From Orbicella franksi (taxonomy: Eukaryota), in contig OZ116703.1 in assembly GCA_964199315.1 (NCBI GenBank), forward strand, positions 28,210,001 through 28,274,000: a stretch of DNA of 64,000 nt, given 5' to 3'. The translations under genes and the position numbers were made by a program. Below the pieces are notes generated by a model. It did no database searches, was not told the origin of the DNA, and saw nothing but the letters and a program-made list of their open reading frames with translations. This document shows, piece after piece, positions 20,956-53,935 of this stretch; within the stretch, counting starts at the first letter, position 1, and each line of letters opens with the position of its first letter.

Positions 20956-21052
20956 GTGAGTGTTTTGTTTGCAGGGGAGGGGTGGGTGGAGGGTACAGAG
21001 AGAGCTTAGAAACTTACGTAAATAGACTATTTTACAGTTGTGTGCATAGTTA

Positions 21053-30637: not shown

Positions 30638-30644
30638 TATAAAA
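30638..30644 (+). promoter_or_regulatory. TATA box of the noggin-like gene
   Basis: CTATAAAAG 55 bp upstream of the ATG at 30693. Confidence 0.6.
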
Positions 30645-30692
30645 GCAAATCGGGCCTAAAGCATTAGACATTTGCTTCTGTAAGCGTAAAGC

Positions 30693-33600
30693 ATGAAGAC
30701 GTTACTAATCATCGCGACAACTTTGCTGCTTAATGCGGCGAAAATTTCGCAATGTGTTCACGCTCGGAACTTTAAAGGTGGTAGCGGTGTGCACATGATT
30801 TACCCACACGAGGGATCTCATCCTAAAAATGACCTAATAGGCAGTGGTCTGCCATTAAAGCCAGTTGAGAGCACTCAACCAAAGAGCATAGACGACTGCG
30901 AGGAACAACTTCAGAAACCGAGCGAGCGTGATTTGAATGAGAGGCGACTTCTCAAACGCCTTGGAGGCAAGATAGATGAGCGCTTTTTGTCAGTGACTGA
31001 GCCCTCGCAGATGTCCGACGAACCGATCGTGCAACGAGTTTCACTGCGTGGCATCACGACCGCAGAAAAAAACTTTCTCAGGCAGGTTATCAGGAACGAG
31101 ACTATACCTAAGATGGGTAAAACGTCCCTATCTGTTGAAAGGTTTTTGATGAAATGGCTCATTCACAAATCGGACTGTCCTGTGGAAAGAACTTGGAAGC
31201 ACTTGGGAAACTGCTATTGGCCGCGGTGGATCTCGGTAAGTAATTAGAAAAGGCTTGAAATGCTGTAGAGCCAGCTAAGCAATTCATTTTTGTGCTTTAA
31301 TGCTTAGGATCCCTTTCTATGTCACCAATTGTGGCGACTGACTGAAACCGCCAGCATATATGAGATCATAAATTTTTGGCCTAGTGGTATGCCTCGGGCC
31401 ATTTTTCATTTGAATGTAAAATTTATTTTTGGCTTGAGGCTGTAGCCGTTATTTTGAAATGTTGCCATGTATAAGAGCTCTTCGCGTACGAGTTTTCCAG
31501 GCAAACCATCAGGAGTCCGTTCGTTTTATTTGAAGAAAAACAGACAATTGTCGATGAATTAGAGAGGAAAGGAGAGCAAAAGCCAGCTTACTTTGCATGT
31601 TGGTGCAGATTTGCGTGTCAGAACGATAAAGATTGGATTGTAGCCTAACACGACTCAATCTTTCATAAACAACTGCCTGGAAGTGTAATAAGTGCTGCTT
31701 GTATTAAAGCGATTTAAATGTAGACCAGACGCAAAAAGCACCTGTCGAACCAAGGTCAAAGATTCACGACAGAAATAATATTCTGTAGAAAACTGGATCA
31801 TATGATACACTTGTATTAATCACAACAATAAGATTTCATATGCTGTTAATATTTCGAACTTCAGTATATGAAAAATGTCAAAAAACAGCCCTATACAGCT
31901 TGAGGTGGGAAGAAAAAGAATTGTTGCTGACTCAGCTGCATAGTAGTAGAGTGTAGGCATTCAAGTATTTAGAAACGTCAGCGGTTTAATTAATTGGGAC
32001 TACTGAATTAACTCGAACAAAGCGGGTCTTTAGTGGTTGCACTCTCGTCTGTCATGAGCAGAACAATCGACCGTTTAGTCGTTAAGAGCCGGGCCTGTAC
32101 GCTTTCACTTGACTCTTGAACCCAGCTTTGCAAATGACACAAGCCAAACAATGCGTGGCTGTTGTATAAGGATCACAGGGTCTTAGGAACGTATTTGGTC
32201 GCTAATTTTCTACATCTTGGGTTTGAATACCGACAAAAAAAAAATGAAAATCGTTTGTGGTCATCGTTCCCGATGTCGAATTTAGCTGGCTTTAAAGTCA
32301 GGTTAAACGAAAACAAACGAGAGATGTAAAAAAGAGTCCAAGAAGAAGAACCTGATCAACTAAAAGTATGCAGGTTTCTTTTCGGTCCGGTATAGCTCAG
32401 TAGAAAAATACTCCCAAAATAATCCCAGGAGTATAAAAACAACGTAAAACAATGAACAAACAAAGGATTTTAATGTCGATAGCGGAGTAATGCTTAGTGA
32501 TACAAGTCAACTTTAGGCTTCCTTGGAACACCGGACTACCATTATCTACAATTTATAGTTTTACCAGCGTGCCCTCCTGCGCGCTGCGCATGTAATTAAT
32601 TCAACCGGGAAATACTTGCGTCAAAAAGTTTCTTTTCTGAACCGAAAAGAGATATTTAAGAACCAACGTTCTGTCGAAGGCGAAAGTTGGAGTGTACTTA
32701 GCCACAGCAATTTTATTGATGGTTCAACCGTGAACTGTGCCTTCCTCGAAAAGTTATTTTTATTGTGCACTTACTGTCTTTATTTGCGTTAAGGTAACTT
32801 TCAACAAAAATTCGCGTTCGGCTCAGTTTACCTCTGTACGGAGTAGTTTCAGGTATTGACTGCAAACATACCACAATGTGATCCAAGAACGAAACAGAAA
32901 GACGATCCGAGCATCCCTAGCATGATTTGGCAGCCATCAACACATATGGATATATCTATCAGACAGTTTCAAATGACCGCTGCTTAGACATTCATACCAG
33001 ACCCTGACAGAAGGAGCCAGACCAATGTTATCTTTCTTACCGGCTTAATCAAATTAATCAATTACGCTTAATACCTCACGTTCTATAAATGAGCTTAGTG
33101 GTATTCCGGACCTTAACGTGCTCTGAGTTTCCGGGTACCGATTGGCAGGACATTAAATTGTGCCTTTTCAAATTTGTGGAAATTATGCTAAACGGGCCGT
33201 TAATGTTTTTGTGGCGTTAACGAATTCAGTGAGCCTGAACAAGCAGTCTGACAAGAAGAAGCAAAGACCCTGACAACCAGACAAGGGTTGCAAGTATGCG
33301 CTTTGCAAAATAACTGACAGAGGCCACGTTTTCATGGTCAAGGCATTTATCGAGTATGGCAATCTACGATTAGCACAGTCGCGTCTAGAGCAGAAGTCGT
33401 CACTAATGCCCTTTTGTTGAGAACACGTCGTTTCTGATGCGTTTTGATCTGCCGTTCACACTCAAACGACCCAAAATTCTCATGGTGTTCATGGAAAACG
33501 CATGCATTTGAAGCGCTGTCCGCTGGAGTGGAGACATCCGAAAACTGAGCCCTAGCGTACTGGCGTGGTTTTTGAATTGACGGAGGTTTCCAAAATGCTG

Positions 33601-34559
33601 ACGTCATTCACATTATGTCCGCATGCGCAAATGACATTTGTGGTGTTTTCCTATAGCATTTTAGCATAAGCGTTTTCGAGCAATTCAATGTGGACAGCGT
33701 GAAATCAGTTCAAACGGCAGTGTGCTGATGCAGAGTTTTCGTCTATACGCTTCATCGAAAACGCAACGTTTCAGAAAAGCATTACTATGAACGGGGCCTT
33801 AATGACTACTTTCTTCATAGCTGCTATGTAAATCCTTAAATAAGGAGATCAGTGGCTTTCAAATGGTATATTGTAAACAGGCGGAGAGTCTTTATTTGCT
33901 GATTTAAGAAAAACTGCCGTTCGCCTTAGGGGATAAAGGGTTAAGTAAACCGGAAACATTTTCTCCGACGTGTAGGTGTAGAGAGAGGGTCAAACTCCGA
34001 AACACACGCTAGAGTCTTTTAAGAACTTGTTAAAACATTCCCTGTCATAAATAGAGTCATGTTATGACGTCATTCTGGAAACATTACAAAACATAGCGTT
34101 CATTTTGCCAACGAAATATTTCATGTTGAAAGAATCCGTTTTGATCCTATTCCATTTCACGCATTACTATATTTCCTTTAACCCTTCTCCAAGTTATTTT
34201 TTTTTGCGTGAAACTGACTAAGCAGAAAGAGTTTTCAGGCTGCTAAGTTTACCTTAAAATAATGGATTAAAGAACGTAGTTTTCCTTCGCAGATGGGCCG
34301 CTGTGTAAACAAGCAGTGCTCGTGGCCTCATGGGATGTCGTGTGTTCCCTCTGATCCAGTCTCAGTGATGATGCTACGATGGCATTGCCGCAAAGTCCGA
34401 GACGGGCGGAAAGGGAAGAGACCTGGGGCCCAAGCTTCAAATATATCTTGTCGGTGGTCGAAGTTCCGTTATCCTATAATTAATAATTGTACATGCAAGT
34501 GCAAAGAAAAGCCTCATGTTTCTGAAAGACTGTTGCCAGTGCGACCTCTTGGAAATTAA
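30693..34559 (+). CDS. Noggin-like protein (NLG-type, 269 aa, secreted); exons 30693-31235 and 34293-34559
   Basis: Signal peptide MKTLLIIATTLLLNAAKISQC. Clip-like region LPLKPVE...KPSERDLNERRLLKRLGGKIDERFLSVTEP. Then CPVERTWKHLGNCYWPRWIS, donor GTAAGT at 31236, acceptor TTTCCTTCGCAG, and MGRCVNKQCSWPHGMSC...LRWHC...CRWSKFRYPIINNCTCKC, the full nine-cysteine noggin pattern. Confidence 0.92.
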
Positions 34560-35871
34560 GTTAAAAGGTAAAATGCTCTAAGTGGTGGTATGGCAACCAA
34601 AACGAAACTATACTTCATTCATCCGAAATATATGTAAAGCTCTATCTTTTGAAACTGATGGCCTCGTAATGCCTAGCAAACAGTTAGCTCCACTCCTTAT
34701 ACCTCGAGCCTTCCAGGAAAGGTGATGGGAACTGGCATGGGGTGGATGAACGGAGACTGGGGACTAAGACGGTGTGCATTTCAATCTTAACAGTATAACA
34801 TAAACGATACTTTTCCAACATAGCAAAAAATAACAGATCTGAAGGGAATGCGAGAAAACAAAACAAAGAGGCAGACGAATACTATTTTGTCTTTTGCTGC
34901 TGCAGTACATGGTTGCAACGAATTTGTATTCTCTTCAGAAATATTCTGTTAAGTCTCTGACACTTTGCAGAAAATCTATTTATGTCGATGATTCTGGATA
35001 GCCGTTTGATTCATAACACTTTGACAAATGAGGTTCTAGTTATTTCGAATATTGCGAAAGAACATGACCTGAAAAGATTAAATGATTGCTTCGAGTTAGC
35101 GTGAAAATCCAGGCATATCATATTCTGGTTCGAGGTAGCGTTACCGAGGGTCCGAGGTATCGTACGTGGCTGACCGTAGTTAGTTTAGTTCAACACGGCT
35201 TAGCCACTGGATGGCAGTGATTTTCTCTTGCCTGGTGCATAATCTTCGTAAAATCCTGCGTCGTAGCTCCATTTTTTTTTTTTAGAATACCTCTCTTCTC
35301 TACCCCGTCCTCTTCATCTACTGCAGTCATCAGTACAACTGGAAAGAAACGGAAACGACGGGATTATAAAAACATTTCAAGATTTCTTTCTTCAGATCGA
35401 CTGAAGAAATAGCGCTTAAATTTATAGTGAAGTGGAAACGTGATACAGCCATAAACGAGAGGTCGCTCGAAAATTGAACGTTGTTTAAAGAGGCGTGCAT
35501 TCAGGAACGTTTCTGCGTCGTGTCGGCTTAAGCTCCTCCCAAGCTCTCAGGTTATAAGCTAACGCAAAGACCCCTAACAGGCTTACAGCAGGATTTTGCG
35601 ATATTTATAAATGATTTAGTGGGTGCCAAGCACGTTCGTTAGGAGGCAATCTAAATAAATAAAAATCGGCTTAAAAGTAAAACCATTTAACTTTTAGTTG
35701 ATATAGCCTTGTTAACTGCTACGATATCTTTGGCCCCCCCTTTTTTTTCTTTTAGATCACATTTCGTTTTTATATCGCTAATAAGATGACATAGACCTCT
35801 ACAGAGTCATTATAGAGTGATACAATGTCAATTTTATAAATTGACCTCGTATACCATTTTATGGTATTTTA

Positions 35872-36104
35872 CAATGGTTGATCTAGAGGCCAGGAGGGAC
35901 CCCGTTAATAGAATGTCAGTGCCGGAGGCCCGAAAATCCCCTTTACTCTCACAAACAGCTTTGAAAGTGAAATAAGCTTCACCCAAAATCAATCTGTCTT
36001 TTTTTCAGGAGCCAATAACTCCTACTTCTTTTAAATATAAAAACCACATTAACTCCAACTCTTCCACCCTGACCCTCCTTGTGAAGGCCCCTAGGTCCGC
36101 CATT
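35872..36104. repeat. Decayed MITE
   Basis: CAATGGTTGATCTAG ... CTAGGTCCGCCATTG imperfect TIRs. Confidence 0.4.
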
Positions 36105-36789
36105 GCCCTTTACAAAGACTAAGTTGGATGCGTGTCGTTCAAGTGCTCTTGAAATATATTTTCCATGCGTCCATTGTAGCTTATATTATTCTATTTTTAG
36201 ACACGAGTCTCCATGAGTATCATTTTTATCTTATGTGTTTTGATTGTATTGCGTTCTTGTGTTTGCTTACGTTATGTACCTGACTGCCTCTATATGATTT
36301 TGTTGTAGTATTGCTGTGCGGTCGTTCTATCCCATAACATGGTTATTTCAGGTAGCCAATACTCTTAGCTTCCCTAATTTACTGACACGATTTGTAAATT
36401 ACGAATAAAGAATGGGTAAAATAAAGCGTTGTTAATTAGTTGTTGTTGTTGTTAAAAAGAAAGGAGGTAAAAGAAAAGGGGCATTACTTGGTTAAATATT
36501 CAGAACAGTCATTTATTCAACTTGTTAGTAGTATAAGGCCGTCTTGCCTGTTTGGTTCTTTATGCTGTACAATAAATTCTCTATTGAACAAGTTTGTTCT
36601 ATAAAGATGGCTGCCGATACTGGCGTCTTTTTTGGCAATTTTTTGAGCCTCAACTGTTCTTGGTCCATAAACAGGCAAAAAAAAAAAAAAGAAAAAAAGA
36701 ACTTGGTCATGTCCAACCTTTCTCGTTCATGGAAACTGGAAAAATTAACGCGACCCGAGTTTAGTGACCAGTGGTAGTTGTTGAATTAA

Positions 36790-37135
36790 GGCCGCTGGCG
36801 CTTATTGTTTCTGCGCATCCTTACTGCGCACGCAAATTCACACGCCACGTCATGCATGACAGCGCGCGCTAAGTAATAAAATGAACAATGATAGGGCAGA
36901 TGGCCATTGCTATAGCTTTGCCTAGATTTAACGATCTTGGACGTTCGGTGACCCATATTTTTCTTTCCAGAAGCAGAGTTTATTTACAATTATCTCCACA
37001 TTGTCCAAAAATGAACAAAAAATTAATGTGGGAAGTTAAAAAATTTTCAAGATTTCTGTTCGCGGGACATCAAATCCTGCCATCTTGCGGCTGCAAGGCG
37101 CGTGAAACTATGGTCGCTAAATGCGAACTTGTTCT
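36790..37135. mobile_element. TTAA-flanked non-autonomous element A (Kolobok-like)
   Basis: TTAA|GG...CT|TTAA (TTAA at 36786-36789 and 37136-37139), with RR..YY termini. Confidence 0.5.
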
Positions 37136-37139
37136 TTAA

Positions 37140-38535
37140 GGAAACTCACCAGTTGACTAAATTCACTTAATGGGTCCACTTAAACAATATTTAGCAGAGA
37201 ACATTTTACTTCAAAGTTCTAATTGCAATATTTTTGGGCTTACAGACACTGTGGCCTTATTTGCTAACGAAGCCCAACTTTTTTAGATTTAAGGTGTCTT
37301 TCCGGTCATGTTCTCTCCAAAACGAAGTCGGTGACCCCCCATTTTTTTTACATTTCTGACATAACTAACTCATCATTTTACAGTGGTAAGTGTCTTAAGA
37401 TGAAGAATGTGAATTCCACCTGATCTCACTACATGTGTCAAAACTTAACTCAGAGATGAACCTATAGCTTTACAGTGGAATACAGAAATAAAACTTCAAC
37501 TGAAAATTAGCAGCTCCATATCATGTTCACATACATGAACATGTACATATAGAGTAACATCAGTCCTTTACCTTGGGACTACAATTAAATGAAACTACTA
37601 TAGAACCCATCACAAGGGAACACAAAAACAGAATGTGTTAATCTGTCTCTATTAATTGAATACAAATCTTGGAAAGTTGATTATTCGAAAAAGTTAGTTA
37701 GTTAGTTACTTAGTTTTCCTAACTGTTCCAGCTTATGCCTGTTGAATTTTTATTCAATTTTTAAAATGATTGTTATCATGCTGTACTTCTACTACATGTG
37801 TTCTGCTGCTGTAAAAATTATGTTATTTATAACTCAATTAAAAATATATAATCTGCGTGTATAGGAGACTTTTGGCTACAAAAGCGTTTACGCGCTACAT
37901 AGCTTTACTAACGCTACTTAGCGTTACGCTACTTAATTAGCGTTACTTACTAACGCTACTTAGCGTTTATGTGCTACAGCATGGTAGTCAGTATTTCAGT
38001 GGACTTAATAAGAAAGAAACTGTTCCTATTAAAAGCGGTGGTCATATTGATTTTATTATGTAATAAATAATTATTTATTATAAAATGATTTTACCACAGA
38101 ACAAATTCAGCCACATAAAGGGTTGCAATTAGCAACCTATGCATCACATTTGACCAAAATATGTTTATTTTCCCGTTTTTGACTGCAGTACCACGAAGAA
38201 CTCTACAATGATCAATTTCTCGTCTCTTTTTATTCAACTACCTTTTCTACATTCATCCAGTAGGCCATTTCCAAGTTGCCTTTTGCCTCTGTGCCAAAAC
38301 GAGTCTAAGTGCGAAACCATTCATACGACTTCCGCCTACAGGTTCATTTTCGTGCAAATCAAACTCAGTTTTGCACGACGACTCCTTTTGAAACTGAGGC
38401 ACAAAGAAACATTCATCCATGAGCTGGCTCACAGGAGCCTATGATTTTTACATTTCTGACATAACTAGCTCATCATTTCCCAGTGGTAAAAGTCTCAGAA
38501 AAAATCAGTGTTGGAAAATTTTCGCGCGAACGTCC
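37140..38535. mobile_element. TTAA-flanked element B (Kolobok-like), interrupted by ~1.05 kb of unrelated DNA
   Basis: TTAA|GGAAAC...CGTCC|TTAA. A 46-bp segment occurs at both 37344-37389 and 38444-38489. Confidence 0.55.
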
Positions 38536-40145
38536 TTAAATACTTTATTTTTAGGCAAAGCGCTTAAAAAAGTTCTTCATGTACCTTAATTGTCTACAAT
38601 TCGCCCCTGTAGAGTCCCAAGGTTGAATACTGGCTATGTTCACCTTCTTGGAAAGGCAAGGATGAGGAAGTCCTTGCAGAAAATGGCATAGATGCCAAAT
38701 GATCAAGTTATAAAGACGGAATAATTCTACCGATTAGGAGATACCCACAAAAGACACTTTAAAAGTAGAAATCTTGAAATTAGTTGTGCTTGAATTGAAA
38801 TGAAGTGAAACTCTTCAGCATTGGTCTAACCCTCTAGTCTTGTTACTAAATGAAAGCCTTGCATGTTGTGGGTAATACATGTTTGGAAATTGAGACCGAA
38901 TTGATGTTAAACAAACTGATCAGATTTTTTTTTGATATGTTTATATTTGTGGCTTTTACACAACTTTCTTCCTATCGTATCACAGTCCCAATGTTGCCAA
39001 CGAACAATCCGAGCACGCCCTGCGTGCCTATCTTGGCAAACGCCTGACTGCCTTCAGTTTACAGGCCTTGGTCCGTAAAAAGCCAACACAACTGAGAATA
39101 AGACACGTTGTCCATTTAAAACGTGATGATCAATTTCAAGATCCCGAAGACAGATGTACAGCTTCTTCCTCGCTTTTGTTTTAAGAATATCACAAAGGAC
39201 TTCAAGAACCAACTTCTTGAAACTATTTAACGAATTTTCATGCGAAAGACCTTTACCTTCTTCTGGAAGAAAATATCATTTTACGAGTACGAGTGAGTGC
39301 GTGCTTTACTCGAGAATGTTTTTATTCATATTATTGTATGCTCTATTGGTTGACGCACAGAAAATCTCTATGAAACATTCTGATGCAGCAAAACATATTT
39401 TCCACAATGGAATCCCGATTTTACGGTCATCGATTCAACGATCAACATTCTTTGTGTGAGTTCGTTATATAGTGAATGTACTGTGAAGGTCTCAGTGCAT
39501 ATGATTAAGAGAAAAAAAGAATCGAATTTACAATCCTCAAGAAATGCCGTGGGAAACTGGATTGTTTAATTTAAGAAATGCTCTTCCAAAAACAAAAAAC
39601 CAACACTTAACATTCAGTCTGACTCCATTAAAGCAAAACTTTTTATTTGACAGTTCAAGGGCACCACGCTTGGTATTTTTATTTTTATTCATCGATTATT
39701 TTTATCTCTTAATCACATGCACTGAGTCCTTCACACGTACATTCACTATATAACGAACTCACATAACGTATCTTATTTGAATTTGAGAATGATGAATATC
39801 GCTGGTTTTTATTCTTAATTGTTTATCGAAAACCTTAGTTATTAGAACATTCTTTGTCCCGGCAAAATTTACAGCCGAAATTGTATGGCTTTGACTGTTG
39901 ACGGTTAAAGATAAGCCCCCTTTTTGACGGTTGACGGTTAAATTTTAGATCATTTGACGGTTGATGGTTAATTTTTCGAAATGAAGTTTATAACATGAAA
40001 TTAGAGTGCAAACTTGGCTGTGATTTGTCACAAATGGATACAATTTTGCCCATATTTGAATAGGTTCAATTAGTCCTATAATTTGTGCATTAAAAAATAG
40101 GTCTTTGGTCTTCAACTTTTCCTTTGTTACCGCTGGACGCATTAA

Positions 40146-41940
40146 GAGGCCCTGCGCCTAAGAAACGACCGATGATTTCCGGCTAAAAAATAAAATCGGC
40201 CGATTTTTATCTCCCAAGTAGAGGTTACCGAATACTATTTAAAAATGAATTTCTTTTGTTTCAGTTTAGCTTTAAACCAAAAATATCGAGCCGCAAACTT
40301 TTTCCGTCTGATAGCAGCAAAATCAGGCCGAAAATAAGCCCGCAAAATACTGTTCAGAAATTACTATCGCAACGCAAAATAATGAGAAAACTACACAGTG
40401 TTGAAGAAAAAGGCCTTTTAATGCAATATCATTCGATAAACATCAAAAAACTGCCTGAGAGATTAAAAAATAACGTTTCAAATGTTGCATACTAAATTAG
40501 ATGGAGCGTTGGAGCTGATTTTAAAATAATTATTTCTCAAAAGTCCAACGCTTTTGAAAGCAATCACAGTGATGAATTAGACATTGGAGGGATACACATC
40601 ACGTTTCTGGAAAAACATTTTTCGGCCAAAGTATATTGACCTTGTGCAAAACGTTCAAAGTTACCGTGTTTACCGTTATCCTGTTACTTCGGCGAAACAC
40701 TTTTCTTTTGCCAATACGGCCGTGGATAGCGTGTTAAACGCCACTTTAAACCTTGCTAGGCATTCAAAGACCATCCTGAGTAGAAGGACGTAGAATTGAA
40801 AGAGACAGGAAGATGAAAAATACACAGAAAAAGAAAATAACTCGAAATTACCATCTGCTAACGAAAGTTGAATCTGGAAAATGTCGTCGCGTGACAGCGG
40901 CCATTGACGTCATTTGTACAAATAGCGGCGGAATGCAAACGAATGCACAAATAGGGAAACAATTTTTCCCGGCCAGAAAACGTTTAGTGGAACAATGTTA
41001 TGTTATTTTTCACCAATGATGGTCACTCAAAGAGAAAAACTTCCCCAACCGCCACACCGTTTTGGCCGCAGCATGATCTGAGTTATGGGGTCACGACTGG
41101 ATCCCTAGCCGCTGACCGCCCGAAGGACATTGCAGACTCGTTTTCCCACGCTCTTGCGACTTGACGTGACAAATGACGTCAATGGCCGCTGTCACACGAC
41201 GACATTTTCCAGATTCAACTTTCGTTAGCAGATGGTAATTTCGAGTTATTTTCTTTTTCTGCGTATTTTTCATCTTCCTTTCTCTTTCAATTCTACATCC
41301 TTCTACTCAGGATGGTCTTTGAATGCCTAGCAAGGTTTAAAGTGGCGTTTAACACGCTATCCACGGCCGTATTGGCAAAAGAAAAGTGTTTCGCCGAAGT
41401 AACAGGATAACGGTAAACACGGTAACTTTGAACGCTTTGCACAAGGTCAATATACTTTGGCCGAAAAATGTTTTTCCAGAAACGTGATGTGTATCCTTCC
41501 AATGTCTAATTCATCACTGTGATTGCTTTCAACAGCGTTGGACTTTTGAGAAATAATTATTTTAAAATCAGCTCCAACGTTCCATCTAATTTAGTATGCA
41601 ACATTTGAAACGTTATTTTTTAATCGCTTCGGCAGTTTTTTGATGTTTATCGAATGATATTGCATTAAAAGGCCTTTTTCTTCAACACTGTGTAGTTTTC
41701 TCATTATTTTGCGTTGCGATAGTAATTTCTGAACAGTATTTTGCGGGCTTATTTTCGGCCTGATTTTGCTGCTATCAGACGGAAAAAGTTTGCGGCTCGA
41801 TATTTTTGGTTTAAAGCTAAACTGAAACAAAAGAAATTCATTTTTAAATAGTATTCGGTAACCTCTACTTGGGAGATAAAAATCGGCCGATTTTATTTTT
41901 TAGCCGGAAATCATCGGTCGTTTCTTAGGCGCTGGGCCTC
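40146..41940. mobile_element. Foldback-like element with 772-bp TIRs and a 251-bp spacer, TTAA TSD (Kolobok-like termini)
   Basis: TTAA|GAGGCCC ... GGGCCTC|TTAA. Arms 40146-40917 and 41169-41940 differ by about a dozen substitutions. The ORF track shows mirrored ORF pairs. Confidence 0.85.
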
Positions 41941-44811
41941 TTAATCGCCTGCTACCGAGACTAGAAGTCAAAAGACTTGCATAGTCTATAAATGTATTTT
42001 TGTGGCATATCAAAACGATCATTTTTGAACACCATACACACCAAACATTTCGTAAACGGTCAATGCCAATTTCGCGACACTTGGAAATTTTTTAACTATC
42101 AAGGAATTTTTCTCTACGAAAAAAAAGAAAATTTGTAAGTGACCACCCAGTATCGAACCCGAAACCTATGTTTCCTAACATCCCTCTTCTACCACGACAC
42201 TACGCAAAAATTAATTATAAAAAGTGACTTTCTTAAATATCAATGATAATGTTGCCCCCCCAACCATCAAATAAAAGCTAACCGCAAGCAAACCAGTGTG
42301 AATATGAACAATCAAGCATTTGGCAAGTGCGTTTTACTCAATCAACAAATTAAAACCAGTTTCTACCTTGTCCAGGCCTATACTAAAGCAGATATGGCAT
42401 CGTCCATTCTGAAAGGCTTGGTTACCAATGATGGCATCGACCGTTTACGAAACGGAAATCAGCAGCATAGACACCATGCTTTAGCCGCAAGGGTCGCTGA
42501 ATTGTACTGCCAGGACGCCGAAACCCCCTTCACTCGACAAAAGTTTCCCGCCTCAAGATTCCTTTTACCTTCTTTGAAGGCCAGGGAAAGTTCAGTGAAG
42601 CCTTTTTAAAATCATTCAAAAGTCAAGTAGCGGTATTTTGAAGGTCCTCCCGCTGTAACCGAATGAACTGGGTCTCGCTGAACAAAGTATAGGTATCAAA
42701 GGTATTTTTGATTTAGTTCGTTTCTACGACTTTGCTACTCTTGGATTGTGTAATCCTTGGTAAAATTATATAAGGTAAATCCTCTGAGATCCAACATATA
42801 AACAATGTTGTTGCCTTGATCCCGTCTCAGATGAATATATCACTTTTGCACTTGACAGTATTATTTAGCTTTGTATCGCATTCAGTCAAGCACTCTAGTT
42901 AGGTTTCATTAAAAATAATGCATTGCAGCCATCAACAGTGCCAGATATGTTTTCGTGATTATCTCTGTCGATACCAAAAAGTTTCATTGGGATAGCAAAC
43001 GGACAAAGAAAGCTAAGATTGTCTCTTTCGCTTTCCCTTAATTCCCTAATGTCAATAAAGCAGAACTGAGATCCATCCCGTTCAAAGCAATCAGAGCTAA
43101 AAAAGAAGTCTACCTACTGACACGATCTTACAACTATCACCTGTAAACCTTAGTTTGTTTCTTTTATCTTCGTTAAAAGTTATAAAGATCAAGATTCGTG
43201 GCTGATTTGCAAAGGAAGTGATTATTTTTTGTTTATGTGATTTTAAATGAAATTTACGCTTTATGTCTTTGAGCAGGTGAAGGTTCCTTTTTTTTTTTTT
43301 TAAACCTCACTTTCATTCAACTTCCGTTTTTCCCTAAATTAGTGTATTCCGGGAACAAGATTTACTCCGAAATGAGCGCTTGTGTGGTTATTCCAGAACA
43401 TACCCTGTTGCTTTGAAGTACGACTGAACAAGTACGGATATTTCAGAGAGGTATGAGAGTGATTTTTTACTTTGGTAAGCTCAATCAAGGAAATGGTGAA
43501 ACTTTAAATTAATTGTTTAAGGCCGAATCATTTCTTTCCAAAGTGGTTTCTAGCGGCGTTCTCCTGCGAGAATATGAATATATGAACACATGAGCATATG
43601 ATCGGCACTCGCACGGGGATATGAACAAAAACAATATTTTTGCTCTCAATATTTATAATGGCTTTAGATATCTTATTTTTCTGAGTGATGTTCCCAGGTA
43701 TACTGCTCTGAAATTATCGTATGAGTTTTGAAAATTAAATGTAATTTATGAGATTTTGGGTTTGAAGTAATTCCGAGAAATCGAGGAACTTCGGATCGAA
43801 GAGATTGCTGAAGAGATCGTCTTGTTTTGGAATTTTCTTTCTTGTTGAAAGATCAAGCGTTGTATTGAGTTGTAAGCAAGGTTCGAAAAACGGTCATTTC
43901 ATGCATGCGTGTAATTTAGATTTGTTTCCAGGAAAACCGAGTGATCGACTTACTTACGCTAAAATTACTAGATGTGTGAGTGAGTTTTTGATGAAGCAGG
44001 AAGTTCGACATAATTCCAAGAAATCGAGGAACGTAAAAGTAATTGTTTCATGAATAATACATATCTCCTAGATATGGCCCTGTTTGTTTTATTATATTAT
44101 ATTTTTTTCACAAACTTTGTAGGGCGAACACTGAGCGAAAGCAAACCATTTTAGCCAAACAACGCCGGATTTTCGTCTAGTGAGAACGCGGAGTCAAATT
44201 TCTCAGTCAAGGCAAGTTATGCATGCTCGCATTAATTGGAACCCTATTCGGTGAAACATTTATTATGTAAGAATCAAAAATATTGTTTTTCTGCTCTTGT
44301 TTCCTTTAAGTGACGTCGTTTAAACGTGCGGTTGCTTTCTGTGGCAAGAATTGTTTTCTGGAACCCACTGAGTGTCTCCTGAGTTGGCAATGTTCTGACG
44401 GATTCCTCGAAAGATGTTCTTTAATTGACTTTAGTTTTGAATAAATTAGTACGTGTATTTTGTTCGTTTTGAAAACATTCAGCTGGTTTCCCAACGAGTG
44501 TTCGTCAGTAAGATTCATTATTAAGATCGAGAACGTTTGGTATATCAACTGATATGCAAAAAGGTAAGTTTTGAAACGGGAAGGTGCTTGCCAAAGTTTT
44601 GGTTTTTGCATCAGAACTATAATGGAAATATGTTGAGCATTTCAGATCGATTAAGATGCACTTAACTGCCTTTTATCTACCTAAATCTGAAAGAACAATA
44701 ATAGTGCAAGAGTACTATCGTATAGAATTAAATGGGAAAAAAAGCAAATCTAGCTATTTAATTAAAACAAACTTTCCATCTTCACACAGTTTTGCTAGTC
44801 TTGAGCGTGAG

Positions 44812-45192
44812 ATGGAGGACCGAGCAATGCTAGCGACATTGGCTTTTGAAGCCTCAGCAACCTACGAACAAGTCCGGCCGAGTTATACAGTTGAATCTGT
44901 AAAGTTCCTCTTGAAAAAGCTTGGCATCCTAGAGCAGGAGAGAGTGCAACCCCTCAGTATACTTGAATTAGGCTGCGGTACAGGAAAATTCACTCGAGTT
45001 ATGATGGAAGTGTTAGAGGGTGTCGACGCACGGGTAATAGCGAGTGATCCAACTGATACCATGATACGACAGTTCCAAAGAATTTTGCCTAAAGTCGAGG
45101 TGCTCCAGTGCTATGCTGAGAACATTGGTAGGTTTGCTTTTATCTTATTTATGTCACCTTACAAAAAAACAAAAAAACAAAAACAAACAAAC

Positions 45193-45228
<36 letters not shown>

Positions 45229-46639
45229 AAACAGAATCGGAGCATGTTTAAGGTCTCTGCACGGTGACAAGGATCATCCGACAGTTACTAGCTAAACTCA
45301 GTCGCGGAAGCATTCCGATTGCTTTAAATACAATTATGTAGTTGGATTCTTGCGCTGATCATGAATATGATTGTCGAAAGAGGATAAGAAGCCTTAAAGT
45401 GTTTATCTCAAATACTTCAAGAACACTTGAAATGATATCGGGGTTAGGTTCACACGATTTGAATGAAAATATGAAAGAAACTTTTTACAATAAAAGCAGA
45501 AATTCTCGTGCGCTCATTGGCTAATTTTTATTGTCAATGAACGAATAGACACATGATTTATAATCTATGCGATAATTTATTGTAAAAACAAAAAGACGTC
45601 AGTTTATTAAATATGTATGCAGACACAGCTTAAATTTTCCGAGCTCTCGACCTTCAGGTTTCCATAATATTAAAATAGAACTCTAGCATTATTAAGTTAT
45701 CTTTAATCATTGAACACGTGTACTTGAAAAAGAAAAACCTCAGGACACGTTACAGACCTTAGAGTAGTTAAATTATGTTAGTTATTTGCGTAGATTTTTA
45801 TGTGTAGATGTATTTATAAGTTTTATAAATCTATTAGTACTCTATCTCCCTATCACGGATTTTCGTTCTCTGATTGGCTACGCTACTCACTGTCTATTGT
45901 GTTGTAGATAGTGAGTAGCGTAGCAGTGTGCCCTTGTTAACAAATTGACGGCCGCTTCTTCGCGTTTTCGAAGTGTGTGTGAAGAGGATTTAGATAAAGT
46001 TTTGAACGACTAGTAGATTTATACTAAAACAGTCAGACTACTCGCGTTCGATTTCTATCGCGCGATAGTTCAGTCGGGCTTAGCCATCGTCAACTATCAC
46101 ATGATAGAAATCTCGAGCTCATGATCTAATTGTTTAATATAGCTCTTCCAGACTCGAGTGTTGATGCAGTTGTGGCAGCCCACTGTTTCCACTGGTTTGC
46201 AAACCAAGATGCTGTGACCGAGATATACCGGGTATTAACCCCTGGGGGATCCCTAGGAATGATCTGGACCATCCCAGATGAGTCGGTTCCTTGGGTGAAA
46301 GATGTGTCAACTTTTTTTCGCCCACTGGAGGAAGACTTCAAGTGCACTACTTCTAAAGAAACCATGGGGAAAGTTTTTGAAGAAGTTAGTGAGCGCTTTA
46401 CTGTCGAGAAGGATTCTAGTGTTAAGATTTCGTGGCAGGTTACCTACGATGGCTGCTACAAGTGCTTCGCTTCAAAGGGCATTTTGCAAAGTAGCTCGGA
46501 TGAAATCAAAGGACAGTTTAAGACTTGGTTCGATAATGTTATGACAAAGCATTTTCCTGTAAGGAAAGAAAACCAGAAGTTCACTTTTCCTTTAGTTTTC
46601 TTGATCTGTTGGTGTAGAAAAATCAACCACGAAATTTAG
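44812..46639 (+). CDS. Class I SAM-dependent methyltransferase (Methyltransf_11-like, ~270 aa); exons 44812-45127 and 46143-46639
   Basis: YEQVRPSYT, motif I ILELGCGTGKFT, VIASDP, AENI, phase-1 GT..AG intron, then ALPDSSVDAVVAAHCFHWF and EIYRVLTPGGSLGMIW. Stop TAG at 46637-46639. The start codon is the best guess; an upstream exon via the AG at 44788-44789 is possible. Confidence 0.88.
45178..45230. repeat. (CAAA)n/(CAA)n microsatellite in the methyltransferase intron
   Basis: Direct reading. Confidence 0.9.
45835..46138. repeat. Interspersed repeat ending just before the methyltransferase exon 2 acceptor
   Basis: CTGATTGG motif, internal hairpin (TTTCTATCGCGCGATAGTT / AACTATCACATGATAGAAA), end TCTAATTGTTTAA. 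Confidence 0.45.
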
Positions 46640-47879
46640 GTTTTTGTGGTACATGAGGGAGATAAGCCCCTAAATGGTCGGCTTTCCTTATATTCACATC
46701 GTCTTCCAGAATATTTGTGAAGGTATCCCTTGTTTATTACATCACGGTCAACCCAAAATCCTATAAAAGCGTGTGCATGACTTTTTGTTAATTTTGCAAA
46801 TGTCCAAATCAATGATGTATTTAGATATTGTACAAATAAAAATTTAGACAGTTCCGTGTGCGACATAATGATAGTTTTACTGCAACCTCAAAGCTTTACG
46901 AATACACCGACGAGAAAATAACACAAAGTCTATTAAGCCGTTACTACTTATGTCAAGTTGTGTCTCAACTAGAGTTCGCTCCATAAAGCCCAGCTTAAAG
47001 GAAACTAAGAGCTTTGGAGTCACTCCAAGTTTTATACTGTTAATACTTAGGACGCTTAAACGCTTCGGACGCTTGAAAATTTCGGACGGTTTTATTTTCG
47101 GACACCATTTTTGTCGGAAATTAAAATCGTCCGAAGTTTTTTGCAAGTGATATAAAAGGATTTAATGCTGCCCAATTTGGAAATGATTAATTGAATTAAA
47201 AAGGCAATTCCTCTGAATAGCAAATTGGACTCGGCCTACGGCTTCGTTCAAAAAATTTGGCTCTCGTTGCAATTTGTCTTTTTTTTTCATTCAGTAACAC
47301 AGTAATTACTTTCAAGCTATATTCCCTCGCAAAATCTCTTAGTCACGATGGGGTAAGATCGTCTTAGGACGAGTACAATTTTCGGATTTCAGGAACAAAA
47401 TACGGAAAACCGAAAACTATTGAATTGTTTTGCACTTTTACCTTTTAGTTGAACGTTGAATAGCGATTTAAGCCTTGAGTTTACTCTGAAATGTTGCTTG
47501 GAAGAGCGAGTAGTCATTAGGCCCTTTGCACGATCCGGTCACATGGTACAAAATCACACATGCTGGAACGCAGGTTGCACAGTGGGAAGTCCCACTGTTC
47601 AACATGCGTCCCAGCATGTGTGATTATAGTAATACGTTCTCTTGCGTGTTATTTCTCCACTTATTTTTCTATTTCGTCTTGCTCACGGGCGTCATTTTTA
47701 TTGTTGTGATGTATTTTGTTTCTGTCATCGTGGAAAGAACCCAAACAGTGCTCATCTTAATAAGGAAAATTTCCAAATAGCCCCGTGCATTTTCATGTAC
47801 TACGCATGGACTCTATTTTAACGGAATATATAAAAACAATAGCCTCTATTTGGCGCGAAAATATGCTCGGATATTAGGA

Positions 47880-48960
47880 GAAAACGTGGCTTATATGGGA
47901 CTGGACCAATCAGAAGACCGGATTTCGCCTACGTGACCACTGTCGATCAATCACATTGCAGGATTTCAATTAAGATAGCGGATGAGGAAAATGGTACTCC
48001 CTCGGCCAACCATTTGGACCAATCGGAAGGCCGGATTTAGCCCACGTGACCACTCTTGACCAATACGGATTTCATCAAAGATGGTGGAACTGAAGATTCG
48101 GCCCTAGTCTCCTTTTAGGGAAAAGTCCCGGTCAAAATCTGCAACCAATCAGAAGACTGGATTGGGTACAAGTGAACCAATAAATGATATGAGCAAAGCG
48201 AGCACTAATTTTTGGGTGGGCAAACGCCCTACGCGACTGTACTCGCTCGCGTCAGCCTTTACCGTTGCTTGGGTCAACCTTTACTTTCGCTCGCGTCAGC
48301 TTATTTATAAATCGCGTGCAGCGACTTTTTTCGCAGTGAAAAGCTAGCCAATTAGATTGCAGGTCAGGTTGAATGGACCAATCAGAAGGCCGGATTTGTA
48401 ACCACGTGATAACCAAGATGGCGAAAGCTTAAAATATCAATTAATTTGACCAAAAAATCGATTAGTTTTACTCTCGCTCGCGCCAGCTTGTTTATAAAAA
48501 CGCGTGCAGTGACTTCCTTTGCAATGAAAAACTAGCAAATCAGATTGCAGGATTCGGGTCACGCTCGCGCCACCATTTACTCACTCGCACGTGCCTGTGT
48601 TCATCTCGCGTCAGCTTTTTACTCTCGCTCGCTAACACGCTAATAAAAATCACGTCACTACAGAAAAATCAACTCTAAAAATTTACTATTGGGACGTGTG
48701 CCGAGTCCTAGTGACTGGCGCCCAAAAGATTAAAATAAAGTTTAGTGTGTGCGTTTTACAGAACAGCAAACTTTACTTTTCTTGGTGGTGTACGCGTAAC
48801 TTTTGGGACTCCCCGTGACGTGGACATCCCGGTTGAATCCGTAAGTACTGGGTTTCAATTAAGTCAAAATGGCCGCCAATAAAACATTTGAGAAAAGCCG
48901 GCGCAACGTAAGCAAGCAGGCTCTAATTTTTGGGCGGGCAGCACGCTCACGTGACGAACC
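47880..48960. repeat. Cluster of short direct repeats rich in CCAATC, CACGTG and AAGATGGCG
   Basis: GGACCAATC(A/G)GAAG(A/G)CCGGATTT at ~47903, 48016 and 48375. An ~85-bp duplication at 48270-48362 and 48465-48550. Confidence 0.7.
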
Positions 48961-49269
48961 AATGACTTCCGTGGAGGAGGATACCCTCTTCCTTTTGCTG
49001 GTCGCGTGTCAGCAGAGGGGGATACTCCCATCCCCTGTTCCTCTCGCGTCGTCTGATGGCGTCAGTTTTTTTCTCTCGCGGCAATTGCCTGTTTTCATGT
49101 GACGTCATCATTTTTGGTCAGCATTTTACTGTCCCCCTTGTTTGTTTGTTTTTTTTCCCACGAAGTCTTTGTTTGATCTGTTCCTTGTTCTTGGCATAAT
49201 AGCCTCTCCAATATTCGTTTAACCGTTCCCTGTTGTTATGTCCAAGGACAAATAGACGAGCATGGAGGC

Positions 49270-49738
49270 TATTGCTGGTTTTCAGTGTCACGCAATTCGA
49301 AATATATCAAAATAAAAATCAAAATCGGTCAATAGATAAAGTCCAGAATCTGGGAAATGAAAGAAGGTAAATATGCAAAGACTCTCGCCAAAATTCTGGT
49401 CACAGCAATTTTTCTTATGCGAGATACGCGGAGCAATTTTTTACCCAAATTTATAGAGATTTGTAAGACTTGGACTGTTTAGATAGCCAACCAAGTTCCC
49501 CGAAATAAGTCACTTTTTTAACCATCATGACAGCTCTGTAGGCCGTCATGTAAATGCCGAGTCATGCAAAAGCTTAGAAATTCAAGCGTAATGTATTACA
49601 AAACCAAGAACCCATTCGGAGCGAAAATTGGTATGAATATTAGTTTTCAGCTGATCTTATACATCATTAAAGTAAAACCTCTGGAAGATCAATAGTTTTG
49701 TAGTTCGAATTTTAGTGACGTCACGTGAAAACCAGCCA
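49270..49738. mobile_element. MITE-like element
   Basis: ATTGCTGGTTTTCA ... TGAAAACCAGCCAT imperfect TIRs. Confidence 0.5.
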
Positions 49739-49920
49739 TTGTGGTTAGCAAATGTTGTTCATAGTTCAAATACTGCAGGGAGGGTGACGCAAATTCTCGG
49801 AAGTGTAAACTACGTATAATGCTTCGCTAGCTGTTTTCCAGGCCTGGAAACAAGTTGAAATAGAGCAGTACGAAGAAACCCGGTAGACGAAGCAGTTTGA
49901 TGATCCGAGGGCCCCATAAA

Positions 49921-50065
49921 GTAAGAGTAGTCCCTCTTTCGCTTAGTCAGTCGTGCTTGACGTGAAAGAAAACCACGAGGAAAATAATGGCTGCGCGAGA
50001 TCCTGGGGACGAGAAGAGGTCTCGCTTGACAGTACCAAGCGAAAGAGGGACTACTCGAGGTCTAA
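49921..50065. mobile_element. Decayed short relative of the AcademH-like MITE at 5863
   Basis: GAGTAGTCCCTCTTTCGCTT ... AAGCGAAAGAGGGACTACTCG, the same TIR core as 5863-6136. Confidence 0.65.
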
Positions 50066-52178
50066 CGGCCCTAAACAGGCTAGCTGTTCGAGGGTCGTTC
50101 ATATTCAACAAAAACATACTCGCAGAATCCAAAATAAAATTACCTCTCGAATACAGGCCAGTCCTTCTCGGCGTTGCTTTCCAATGGCTTAAGATCAAAA
50201 GAACCCTCTACTGTAGACAAGCCGCCAAATTGGTAACCAACGCCGAGAGGAGTTTGGGACAAGTTTCTTAGAAAGAACTTTATTAATGAAAATCGCGGGA
50301 TCTGCACTGAACGGAGTTCAGCAAGACAAAAGCTAGGGTTGCTAGACTTTACTATAGATTAGAAACATTTTGATATCAGAAGATGACCACGGCATATTAA
50401 CATATTTGATAATACTCAGTTCATTAGTCCTCTCCAGTTTCTCCCAGAAAAAGCGCTTGTATACAAGGCCCCCAACTATATTGTAACTTTAAACTCATTT
50501 GTCTGTTAGAATGTTACCGGTATTAAAGATTATAAAACTAATTTTAAACGTATTGAGGTGACCTTTGATTCGAAGAAGGATTGCAATTCTTTTAAGAAGC
50601 GCATGGGCGGTCTGCCCATCAATCTTTAGCTGACTGTCAGCGCACGACCATTGTTTGATCGGAAAAATAACCCGCGTACTAGTCTTAAAAGTACGGTACT
50701 GCTCTAAAAACGGAAAGGAGTGTCGCTCTTTGTTTCCGCCCCTTGAGTGATGAACACAAAAGGTACAACAATTCCAATCAAATGTTCCCCCGATGCAGTG
50801 TGTGTTTCCTTTGACGTGGTTTTGTGTGTGCGGCTTTTGTCTTTGCAAGTATCCTTACTGACGTTATTTGTATAGGGTATTATTACGAGCTGTGAGCCGC
50901 AGGGAAGTTTACTGAGATCATTCAAGTTGCTACCACATGCGTATGAAATGTTCTCGCCCAAATAAACACACTGATATCCGTTAATGGAATCTTGGCCTTG
51001 AAAAGGAAATATTTATATCTCCACCCCCACAATCAGAATCTAAGACAGCAGCGCTCCATACCTAAAGCATATGTGACTATGTGTTTTCGAATTCACCCTT
51101 GTGTGCGGGTCATTTTATTTTTAGCTCCGTTCTTCCGACTGTTGACAATGGCTAACAAAAGGACAATGAAGGTATGGAAACTATTTCTCTGGGAGTTATT
51201 AGGGTTCAAATTAAAACTCGGTCAACTGCAAATTCTAGAACAAAGGGAGGTAAATCGTAAGATCAGTTTTAGCAAGACCTTATTAAGTCCTTTATAATCG
51301 TTTTCCGTTTTGTTTTTCAAAAAGAATGTATTTTTAGAAGCGCTTCAGAAAAACCCATAACATTTGTTTGCATAGAGACATACAGCTTAAAAAACATAGG
51401 TCAAGCCAGCCGAAGAAAGTGAAAGGAAGACAGACAAACGGATAAAATATCATAAACTCTGAATGATTTTAATTAAATCGATTCACTGTTTTTCATACAT
51501 GTGACTTTAAGAATGCTGTGAGGTAAACAAAACGTGACTAACGGCACTCTAAAGCTGTGCTAATGCTCATAACGTTTTGTCCATCAACATGTCTAGATTT
51601 AAGTCGACACTATAATTGGTACACATACAACTGTGTAGGTAACAGTATCGAAACATAAACGCTCTCTTAAAAATAAATTAAACATTTCGTGGTAAGTTTC
51701 CTTTAATAGTTAAGTTCAATCAGCCTCCTCAAGGCCATTCGTTCATTAATTCAAGTTTCTTTCGCAATTCGTGACCGATCTCTAGTATTTCTCTTCTTTC
51801 TCGTCACTGTACGCTGTCCATGTTAAAGACAATAGTGGTTTTTAAAAACTTGTTGATTTAGCTTTAGTGGTCCAAAATTGGCCGGAAACGGCTCTCTCTA
51901 TCTCGCTGCCGATCTACGCGTGTCGGAGACATTAGGAAGTGTGTTTTAAGGCGCAGATAGTACAAAGCGTAAAGTAAACTCAGATGTTCTTTAATGGACG
52001 CCATAAGGCGGTGGGATTGTTTCATCATAGCATCTCAATTAGTATACTACCGTACTTTCTTAAAAGTATGTTTAACACCTCTTGAAAAGCGCTAAATACG
52101 GCTAAGGTTATTTTACAGATAATACAATCATTTCTTGACGTGCTGTAACTCTAAGCCCGTGAATGAGGTGCGAATTTG

Positions 52179-52184
52179 TTTATT
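52179..52184 (-). terminator. Candidate polyadenylation signal of noggin
   Basis: AATAAA on the minus strand ~290 nt after the stop codon. Confidence 0.35.
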
Positions 52185-52474
52185 CTGACCCTGGTATTCA
52201 GTTAATTCAACAATCCTGCACGGGACTTTCTGTTCGTTCATGAAAAGGCCACTTAAACGTAACTAACCTGTCAAATAAACGCGGCGCAAATATAAGCAGC
52301 AGCTCAAAATCCATTGTTCTATAGTGGACAAGTCCAAGTTCTTCATCTTCTGTGCCTTTTCTTTCACTTATTTCCTTCATTAAAAATTGGAGAAGTCTTT
52401 GATTTTAGGTTCGGATTTGTGACCCCACTTGTCAGACAGTGCAATCCAAATTGGAGTACCCCTGACTCCTGCCC

Positions 52475-53179
52475 TCACTGTGAACACGAACATCTACAAG
52501 CGGTAGTCACGGGATAAAGAAACTTCACCCATCTGCATTTTGTATCCTTCCGTTCGGCGAATGTATCCAGGCAAAACCATCGAAGGACTCCCACGCGTTT
52601 TTTGCCAGAAACACGGCACCTCATCCCCGATGGAAATGAGCACGTTGCCTTTTTAGAACATTTTCCGACATTGATGTGACGAGGCCAATAGCGTACTCCA
52701 AAATCCTCCCATTTCTGGAGCACAGAACAGTGTGACACTTGCCAAAGCCAAAGCTGTAGTTTTTTACTTGCCTTAGGTCCAAGATATCTTTTCATACCGG
52801 GCATTCTGAAATCAAGGTTTTTTATTTCTTCCGGCATGCTCTTTACCAGCATCTTACGCAAGAAGTCCTGCTCGTCTGGAATGGTGTCGTTCTTCTTCAT
52901 CAAAAGCTCTTCTTTGGTTAGCGCAATATATTTTGGGTCAAAGTCAATTCCTAGTTGTGTTTTCATCGCGTCGAGATCAAAGTCGCCTTCTACAGGATCA
53001 CTGGGGTAGCTTTCAGGCTCTGGCGGTACCTTGAGCTTCAACTTGTCTCTTGAGGGTTGCGGACGGACGTCGGGTTTTAGGTGTTTCCAGGGTTGTGCCT
53101 CTGATGAGGTCTGCCAAACAGTGCTCAGAAAGCAAGCAATAACTAGCGTGAATATACTCTTGAACTTAGAGTGTCGCAT
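52475..53179 (-). CDS. NOG: Noggin (canonical type, 234 aa, CDS without intron), secreted BMP antagonist
   Basis: Signal peptide MRHSKFKSIFTLVIACFLSTVWQTSSEA. Clip RPQPSRDKL...DPVEGDFDLDAMKTQLGIDFDPKY. Basic KRYLGPKASKKLQLWLWQVSHC. Then WEDFGVRYWPRHINVGKC..C..GMRC...LRWFC...CRWVKFLYPVTTACRCSC, nine cysteines. Confidence 0.95.
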   Translation of the reverse strand: MRHSKFKSIFTLVIACFLSTVWQTSSEAQPWKHLKPDVRPQPSRDKLKLKVPPEPESYPSDPVEGDFDLDAMKTQLGIDFDPKYIALTKEELLMKKNDTIPDEQDFLRKMLVKSMPEEIKNLDFRMPGMKRYLGPKASKKLQLWLWQVSHCSVLQKWEDFGVRYWPRHINVGKCSKKATCSFPSGMRCRVSGKKRVGVLRWFCLDTFAERKDTKCRWVKFLYPVTTACRCSCSQ

Positions 53180-53929
53180 CTCTAGAAACTTCTCAGTGTA
53201 CTGTCACGTAGGTTAAGCCTCAGAATGGGAAACTGCGTTGGGCGTTCAAGGCGTTCTTTCGGTCCGTGGAGAGAAGTCGTGATCTTGACAGTAACGAGGT
53301 CCTTCTTAACTGCTGCTTTGCTTCATGTGTCAACCCAGTTATCACTGTTTCAAACAATCAAATTCAAAAAATAAATAAATATCTCAAATTATATCCGACT
53401 ACCATCAAGTTCTTATTTACTTTGTCTACTTTTGCTCGTCTTTAAGTCTAGACAATCATTGATAGCATTAAATTCAGTAGCTCGGCTCTTTACGTTAACT
53501 GCCTCTACCTACATACGTTCACTCACTCGCTATCCGTGTATCCCTTTGACGTGGTGCCGAAAATCGGGTTAGTATCGGAAATGCCCCACAGTTTTGATGA
53601 GTTCCGTGGTTTTCAAAATTTTCAAAAAACTTTTGCCCGGCGCTATGCCATGTTTATTAGCTTGCGTAAGACCAACAGACTTGGCGCTGTTAAAATACGT
53701 AGTCTTAATGTAACTCGGATCGCAGCCCGACGTCGACGATACTTATTATTTTGGGTTCATTTCATTTAGTTGCTTTTGGTAATCAGATGAAACGAGGCAT
53801 CCGGCTTTGTGGTTAGCAAAGCACCGTGCTCAAACCGTCGTCTCTCCTCGGCTTCACTGCGCAGTGCGGTCTGTTCGGCTTTTGCAACATGTTAAATAAA
53901 GTCTATCCCAGCAAGGAACAAGGCGCTAA

Positions 53930-53935
53930 TTTATA
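53930..53935 (-). promoter_or_regulatory. Candidate TATA box for noggin, next to a GC box
   Basis: TATAAA on - with GGGCGG at ~53947, ~750 bp upstream of the ATG. This implies a long leader or a 5'UTR intron; a possible acceptor TTTGAAACAG lies on - at ~53345-53354. Confidence 0.3.

Follow-up and report, generated by a model that had tools for sequence, protein, structure and literature searches.

The 64,000-nucleotide window analysed here (contig OZ116703.1 of the Orbicella franksi assembly GCA_964199315.1, positions 28,210,001 to 28,274,000 of the forward strand; positions below count from the first letter of the window) contains two genes of the noggin family, a noggin-like gene (nlg) on the forward strand and a canonical noggin gene on the reverse strand, which converge tail to tail with their stop codons 17.9 kb apart. 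An earlier note, made from the letters alone, had described them as two complete but very divergent noggin-domain genes facing each other at a distance of about 18 kb, one with an 11-amino-acid (aa) loop between the fifth and sixth canonical cysteines (Cys5-Cys6 loop) and no coding intron, the other with a 20-aa loop and an intron, and this description is borne out throughout by the open reading frames (ORFs), Pfam matches, splice joints and RNA contigs. The two proteins are about 27% identical. When all 497 Mb of the assembly were searched in six frames with the Pfam Noggin profile (PF05806, curated cut-off 24.1 bits), the noggin and nlg loci were the only ones found, and the chance of two such loci lying within 22.5 kb of each other is estimated at about 1e-4 (2 x 22.5 kb / 497 Mb). 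Both genes are transcribed: RNA runs of one study contain each of them and the metatranscriptomes X5-X8 contain both, a joint occurrence in bulk-tissue RNA that denotes presence only, not co-expression. The Orbicella faveolata proteins XP_020606328 and XP_020606405 are encoded on one 522,614-bp scaffold and were both already in RefSeq.

According to the RNA contigs, the nlg transcript spans from about 30245 to past 35500 on the forward strand. The 5' untranslated region (UTR) occupies 30245-30692, its 5' limit being approximate as set by the ends of the RNA contigs, which in X1, X2 and X3 start between 30245 and 30575 and enter exon 1. Coding exon 1 (30693-31235, 181 codons; Pfam Noggin 70.8 bits, profile positions 22-153) encodes a signal-peptide-like N-terminus, a divergent clip region, the first canonical cysteine (C162) and two extra cysteines, Cys69 and Cys174. 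The remaining eight canonical cysteines, the basic 20-aa Cys5-Cys6 loop (RKVRDGRKGKRPGAQASNIS) and an 18-aa C-terminal tail are encoded by coding exon 2 (34293-34559, 88 codons and a TAA stop; 50.1 bits, profile positions 154-211). Since exon 1 ends at profile position 153 and exon 2 begins at 154, the two pieces abut exactly. Between them lies a phase 0 GT..AG intron of 3057 nt (31236-34292) with a GTAAGT donor at 31236 and a polypyrimidine/AG acceptor (AG at 34291-34292), and the splice joint 31234/5 to 34292/3, skipping 3057 bases, is seen in contigs of three polyA RNA-seq runs. The 3' UTR covers at least 34560-35500, with RNA contigs of X1, X2, X3 and X5 continuous over 34292-35500. An AATT insertion at 34553, present in RNA contigs of three runs, was considered as a protein-changing variant and rejected; it recreates the Gly-Asn-stop end and is a neutral polymorphism. 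The spliced product of 269 aa is 98% identical to the 269-aa protein P0022 of other assemblies, and differs from P0022 and from O. faveolata XP_020606405, annotated as 'noggin-2-like', at 4-5 positions. The position of the intron is common to Pocillopora, two other coral assemblies and Nematostella. A segment upstream of and within the 5' UTR (29864-30678) is conserved with Pocillopora, and the blastn blocks near the 5' end of nlg show 71-80% identity to the Pocillopora locus L010 and to locus L005.

The canonical noggin coding sequence (52475-53179, reverse strand) is a single intronless ORF of 234 aa and a TGA stop, matching PF05806 with 170 bits over profile positions 11-211 in the Pfam search. 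Its Cys5-Cys6 loop is LDTFAERKDTK. Hexacoral orthologues are 50-83% identical to the window protein; P0062 is identical to it, and O. faveolata XP_020606328, labelled 'noggin-like', differs by one residue. A 286-aa 'long form' (P0001, the representative of its database cluster) was examined as a stop-loss allele and rejected: it reads two in-frame TGA codons (52475-52477 and 52365-52367, reverse strand) as W, a gene-caller artefact of the wrong genetic code in metagenome annotations. Directly 3' of the noggin stop, blastn delimits a conserved stretch of 1.9 kb (50575-52474, reverse strand), which represents a long 3' UTR, a conserved non-coding element or both, and past the ATG lies a conserved upstream region of about 1.7 kb (53180-54861, reverse strand; blastn against L004 and L010), a 5' UTR or promoter. 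The interval 50575-53182 forms one alignment with Pocillopora L010 at 70.5% identity, and 50636-54861 forms one alignment with L004 at 68%. Such non-coding conservation, at about 68-70% identity to Pocillopora and to the assembly ERZ25067868, is unusually long on both flanks of the coding sequence.

The linkage of the two genes extends to other anthozoans: they converge in like order in Nematostella and Pocillopora, and the noggin flank of Oculina patagonica, where noggin is followed by a methyltransferase gene, is collinear with the window. In Nematostella vectensis (GCA_932526225.1, OW051996.1), a gene called as UTP6 (forward strand; Pfam U3_assoc_6 and UTP6_C) is followed by noggin2 on the same strand (P0204 = ABF61776 / Q0Q622), whose intron falls at the same codon position as that of coral nlg, and by an intronless 245-aa Noggin gene on the reverse strand; the coding regions of the pair are 3.2 kb apart, and tblastx aligns the entire block collinearly with the window. 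The two are NV2.7393 (noggin2) and NV2.7394 (noggin1) in Knabl et al. (PMC11846459), consecutive gene models. On Tara Pacific scaffolds of Pocillopora the order is nlg (forward), methyltransferase (forward) and noggin (reverse), with stop codons 5.9 kb apart and UTP6 upstream. Furthermore, in the hexacoral-like assembly ERZ25073755 (noggin 50% identical), noggin on the forward strand and nlg exon 2 on the reverse strand, 5.4 kb downstream, are again convergent. In two other coral-like assemblies the pair lies on one contig in a different arrangement, 45 kb apart with a shared strand in one and 171 kb apart and divergent in the other; nlg is still beside UTP6 in both, so it is noggin that moved. 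In five assemblies, that of Nematostella among them, UTP6 adjoins nlg and points the same way (L005, L007, L010 and L012 are among the loci); as in the window, its last exon precedes nlg in L005, L007 and L010. Thus a block of UTP6 and nlg on one strand and noggin converging on them is common to Scleractinia and Actiniaria, and noggin and nlg were therefore already neighbours in the hexacorallian ancestor. A scan of metagenome contigs with a two-class profile (52 loci) and a tblastn rescan found no further contig with both genes; the long matches came from nlg contigs resembling Orbicella or from lone bilaterian genes. In the Lingula genome paper, nlg is placed on chromosomes containing the ancestral linkage groups (ALGs) H and Q (PMC13121700).

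For the phylogeny, 421 noggin relatives were collected by profile search and a maximum-likelihood tree of 69 sequences was built in IQ-TREE under LG+C20+F+G4, from an alignment in which the columns of the Cys5-Cys6 loop were largely dropped. The nine canonical noggin cysteines are invariant in all 69 aligned sequences, both window proteins included. The tree separates a long-loop side, with coral nlg, Nematostella Noggin2 and octopus, spider, copepod, millipede and hemichordate proteins, from a short-loop side with coral noggin, Nematostella noggin1 and fish, Daphnia, insect and gastropod noggins, the split having 99 / 96 support (ultrafast bootstrap, UFBoot / Shimodaira-Hasegawa-like approximate likelihood ratio test, SH-aLRT). 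By their placement in this tree, the window genes are the coral orthologues of Nematostella noggin1 (canonical) and noggin2 (nlg). Each groups with bilaterians of its own loop type and not with the other, as it would after the recent lineage-specific duplication that the earlier note had named, next to a lack of linkage in other anthozoans, as an outcome fatal to its proposal; a recent duplication within Scleractinia was likewise rejected, as both orthologues and their arrangement are present in Nematostella. With both orthologues and the arrangement found in the anemone and in corals, the duplication is at least as old as their common ancestor. Loop length sorts with the split, from 15 to 55 aa on the nlg side and from 4 to 13 aa on the noggin side. 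The insertion that marks the nlg class is present in coral nlg, whose loop has 20 aa compared with the 11 aa of its linked partner, and the short loop of the canonical class in coral noggin; the bilaterian loops sampled on the nlg side have a median of 33.5 aa, the coral loop being shorter than most. Noggin and noggin-like have been described as separate bilaterian orthogroups, Schmidtea having eleven noggin-like genes, molluscs and annelids one, and Xenopus likewise one, noggin4 (PMC13121700), a scheme that fits the nlg clade of our tree through its molluscan member.

A hemichordate protein annotated as 'noggin-2-like' (P0163; locus L014, Glandiceps talaboti OZ203269.1, gene at 10001-10771) has a basic loop of 22 aa and falls on the nlg side of the tree. 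Invertebrate deuterostomes have been stated to possess only one noggin type, Noggin1/2-like (PMC7483449), and the placement of P0163 sits uneasily with that claim, on which a hemichordate long-loop noggin has a bearing.

Taken together, the best overall explanation is an ancient local duplicate pair retained in Hexacorallia, to which we give a probability of roughly 0.7. The pair probably derives from one local inverted tandem duplication that preceded the cnidarian-bilaterian split and founded both classes, with the original linkage kept in hexacorals. Several points weigh against this reading. When all cnidarian noggins were held to one clade, the approximately unbiased (AU) test did not reach rejection (log-likelihood difference 10.9, p-AU 0.103), so that the pre-bilaterian date rests on the bootstrap and the loop character. 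The tree contains neither planarian nlg nor vertebrate Noggin4 sequences, and the probable membership of coral nlg in the orthogroup of the bilaterian noggin-like genes is thus reached via molluscan and other relatives; many of its 'bilaterian' rows are metagenome or transcriptome proteins with a taxon taken from named neighbours, and what we say below on the function of both coral proteins is by homology. No nlg was found within 10 kb downstream of noggin on the anemone-like contig L017, and in the hemichordate Glandiceps talaboti and the copepod Tigriopus californicus neither a second noggin nor UTP6 was found within 10 kb of nlg, which confines the linkage evidence to Hexacorallia. The proposal of the earlier note that the tight linkage may preserve the duplication that separated the two classes is supported in part, by the tree split and the hexacoral synteny, and is weakened by the AU result and by these 10-kb negatives. 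The unrejected topology is what one would expect of a duplication on the cnidarian or anthozoan stem, in which the fast copy gained a longer basic loop independently and its grouping with bilaterians is an artefact of composition, convergence or long branches. Such a history also agrees with the support of only 88/63 for the cnidarian nlg clade, the very long branch of Nematostella Noggin2 (1.35) and the lability of the loop, which reaches 24-47 aa in some insect proteins on the noggin side; tight linkage is equally expected of a younger tandem duplication, and vertebrate authors hold that non-BMP-binding noggins can arise repeatedly (PMC7483449). However, the free tree is the better one by those 10.9 units, and the 99/96 split was obtained with a mixture model meant to withstand long-branch attraction. 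The stem of cnidarian noggin, the longest at 1.2, did not draw the cnidarian nlg branch to it, which argues against a simple long-branch artefact, loop length agrees with the split though it contributed little to the tree, and the orthologues and linkage common to anemone and corals show that the duplication is not recent. We therefore regard a stem duplication as unlikely. An assembly error, or a pseudogene with one copy non-functional, has virtually no chance, given that both frames are intact with the nine cysteines conserved, both genes are in RNA contigs and nlg is correctly spliced; moreover, the coral orthologues are under evident constraint (57-98% identity) and the arrangement recurs in independent assemblies of other species.

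A separate question, compatible with either dating, is whether functional constraint holds the genes together, through shared cis-regulatory elements or a chromatin domain serving an 'antagonist plus modulator' module, as the earlier note had proposed for a paired BMP-modulating unit. Such a constraint would explain why the genes still converge in four lineages or more (Orbicella, Pocillopora, Nematostella and ERZ25073755), why noggin is flanked by long stretches of conserved non-coding DNA and why both mRNAs occur in the coral metatranscriptomes X5-X8. The content of the interval speaks otherwise. It houses a two-exon gene for a class I methyltransferase dependent on S-adenosylmethionine (SAM) on the forward strand (about 44656-45141 and about 46141-46639, junction approximate), with Methyltransf_25 and Methyltransf_11 matches split over two ORFs. 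Pocillopora and Oculina carry the gene in the corresponding place and orientation; it is missing from the 3.2-kb Nematostella interval and was thus inserted, or lost, after the anemone-coral split. This unrelated gene, which occupies the interval in robust corals, has stood between the pair since at least the Orbicella-Pocillopora ancestor, and the interval, which ranges from 3.2 to 17.9 kb, also tolerates a 1.8-kb foldback insertion. The latter is an inverted repeat with 777-nt arms at 40141-40917 and 41169-41945 that are 98% complementary around a 251-nt spacer, each arm carrying an identical 79-aa ORF on opposite strands; it probably arose as a foldback-type transposon or through recent palindromic duplication, and helps to widen the interval. 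In addition, blastn against the coral loci detected no conserved non-coding blocks in the middle of the interval, the blocks adjoining each gene separately, and in the two rearranged coral assemblies noggin lies 45 and 171 kb away and re-oriented, with nlg still by UTP6 and both genes intact; the bulk-RNA co-occurrence, as said, is not co-expression. The idea of a shared regulatory domain is thus not upheld, and constraint of this kind appears quite unlikely. Slow local rearrangement, with each gene retaining its own flanking regulatory DNA, accounts best for the linkage. Very unlikely, in our estimate, is a still stronger version, in which the pre-bilaterian inverted tandem pair was kept as a push-pull BMP module in which a ligand trap is paired with a paralogue that promotes BMP or shifts specificity, perhaps with disulfide-linked heterodimers formed via the shared C-terminal cysteine. 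Were it true, hexacorals would preserve the ancestral locus intact, the dispute over one versus two ancestral noggins would be settled and Noggin4 and nlg would belong to an ancient lineage.

The upstream neighbour of nlg is represented by the 3' part of UTP6 (16374-26618, forward strand), collinear by tblastx with the Nematostella locus L012. Its exons reach to about 26.6 kb, the last one lying at about 26450-26630. The UTP6 region adjoining nlg in the window has also been given as 5000-26650 on the forward strand.

In the canonical coral protein, human Noggin (PDB 1M4U) is matched over residues 38-232 with E = 5e-32, and the fold of the coral protein was assessed by this sequence match. The alignment shows that the start of the clip is kept (RPQPS against human RPAPS, i.e. 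RPxPS) and that V218 lies opposite human I218, retaining a hydrophobic residue; the region of L46/E48 is ambiguously aligned. Groppe et al. (2002) reportedly found the same BMP-contact residues of Noggin to be critical. Critical contacts of the clip and I218 type are also described in PMC7483449 and PMC10869764. For nlg, the AlphaFold2 model has a mean predicted local distance difference test score (pLDDT) of 79, above 90 in the core, and among PDB structures it matches 1M4U_A (E = 4e-10) and 7AG0_A (E = 8e-8) best, i.e. a Noggin fold. Relative to the canonical copy, nlg has a changed clip region, a 6-aa insertion, the Lys/Arg-rich loop extension and the 18-aa C-terminal tail; the loop extension is modelled at low confidence and is thus probably flexible. 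The residue at the I218 position, S in the window nlg and L in other coral nlg, is not diagnostic. The extra cysteines C69 (about 30897-30899) and C174 (about 31212-31214) occur in each of the seven scleractinian nlg proteins examined and in neither bilaterian nlg nor any noggin, and they may form an additional disulfide tethering the N-terminal/clip segment to the core.

By inspection, the N-termini of both proteins open with a short charged segment that leads into a hydrophobic one, and both would be secreted cystine-knot proteins that keep the nine cysteines. In the 1M4U structure, the last cysteine of Noggin forms the dimer disulfide. From its conserved contact residues, the canonical copy is most likely a BMP-sequestering antagonist, which in the classical manner would bind BMP2/4 and BMP5-8. 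By analogy with relatives of its class, nlg is most likely a modulator whose binding to ligands or to the matrix is altered, and would not act as a simple BMP trap. Planarian nlg8 facilitates BMP signalling, opposite to noggin (PMC10545109), in agreement with the statement of the earlier note that planarian noggin-like genes act differently from noggin. Xenopus Noggin4 binds Wnt8 and not BMP (PMC4789793).

Both genes and both classes were already known, and their adjacency is implicit in the Nematostella gene numbering. The searchable literature, which leaves out much relevant work, yielded no statement on noggin/noggin-like linkage or synteny across anthozoans. The retained pair is thus a modest but real evolutionary observation, ordinary for coral biology. 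It touches on a dispute over the ancestral number of noggin genes in animals, one or two: Ermakova et al. (PMC7483449) and an elasmobranch study (PMC10869764) favour only one, from which copies that do not bind BMP arose more than once, whereas in studies of planarians and spiralians noggin-like counts as a distinct class of great age. A conserved pair beside UTP6 offers a concrete ancestral locus to seek in other phyla, and NV2.7393/NV2.7394 of Nematostella a natural system in which to ask whether the two classes act oppositely on BMP signalling.

Among known systems, the closest is the noggin1/noggin2 pair of Nematostella, orthologous to the coral pair in the tree and laid out alike, with UTP6 followed by noggin2 and an intronless noggin1 converging on it. 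The loop dichotomy is similar (24 and 4 aa in Nematostella, 20 and 11 aa in the coral), whereas the Nematostella interval of 3.2 kb holds no gene and the coral interval of 17.9 kb holds the methyltransferase gene and the foldback repeat. Moreover, scleractinian nlg has the cysteine pair C69/C174, while Nematostella Noggin2 is without the second and has instead a CxxC in its N-terminal region. Human Noggin, solved with BMP-7 (1M4U) and with BMP-2 (7AG0), shares with coral noggin the nine cysteines, the RPxPS motif and the hydrophobic residue at 218; the coral loop exceeds its human counterpart by 4 aa, and the coral protein is without the strongly basic KKQRLSKKLRRK-type segment of the human chain. 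The nlg protein has an identity of only about 30% with the solved Noggin, from which it departs along the entire clip region. With planarian nlg genes (e.g. Smed-nlg8) and the bilaterian noggin-like genes, coral nlg has in common the extended loop and its standing as a second class beside canonical noggin. Planarian nlg loops measure 50-60 aa. The coral nlg has a coding intron, unlike the intronless nlg genes of the hemichordate and the copepod, and the BMP-promoting nlg8 and the Wnt8-binding Noggin4 may serve as precedents for its function.

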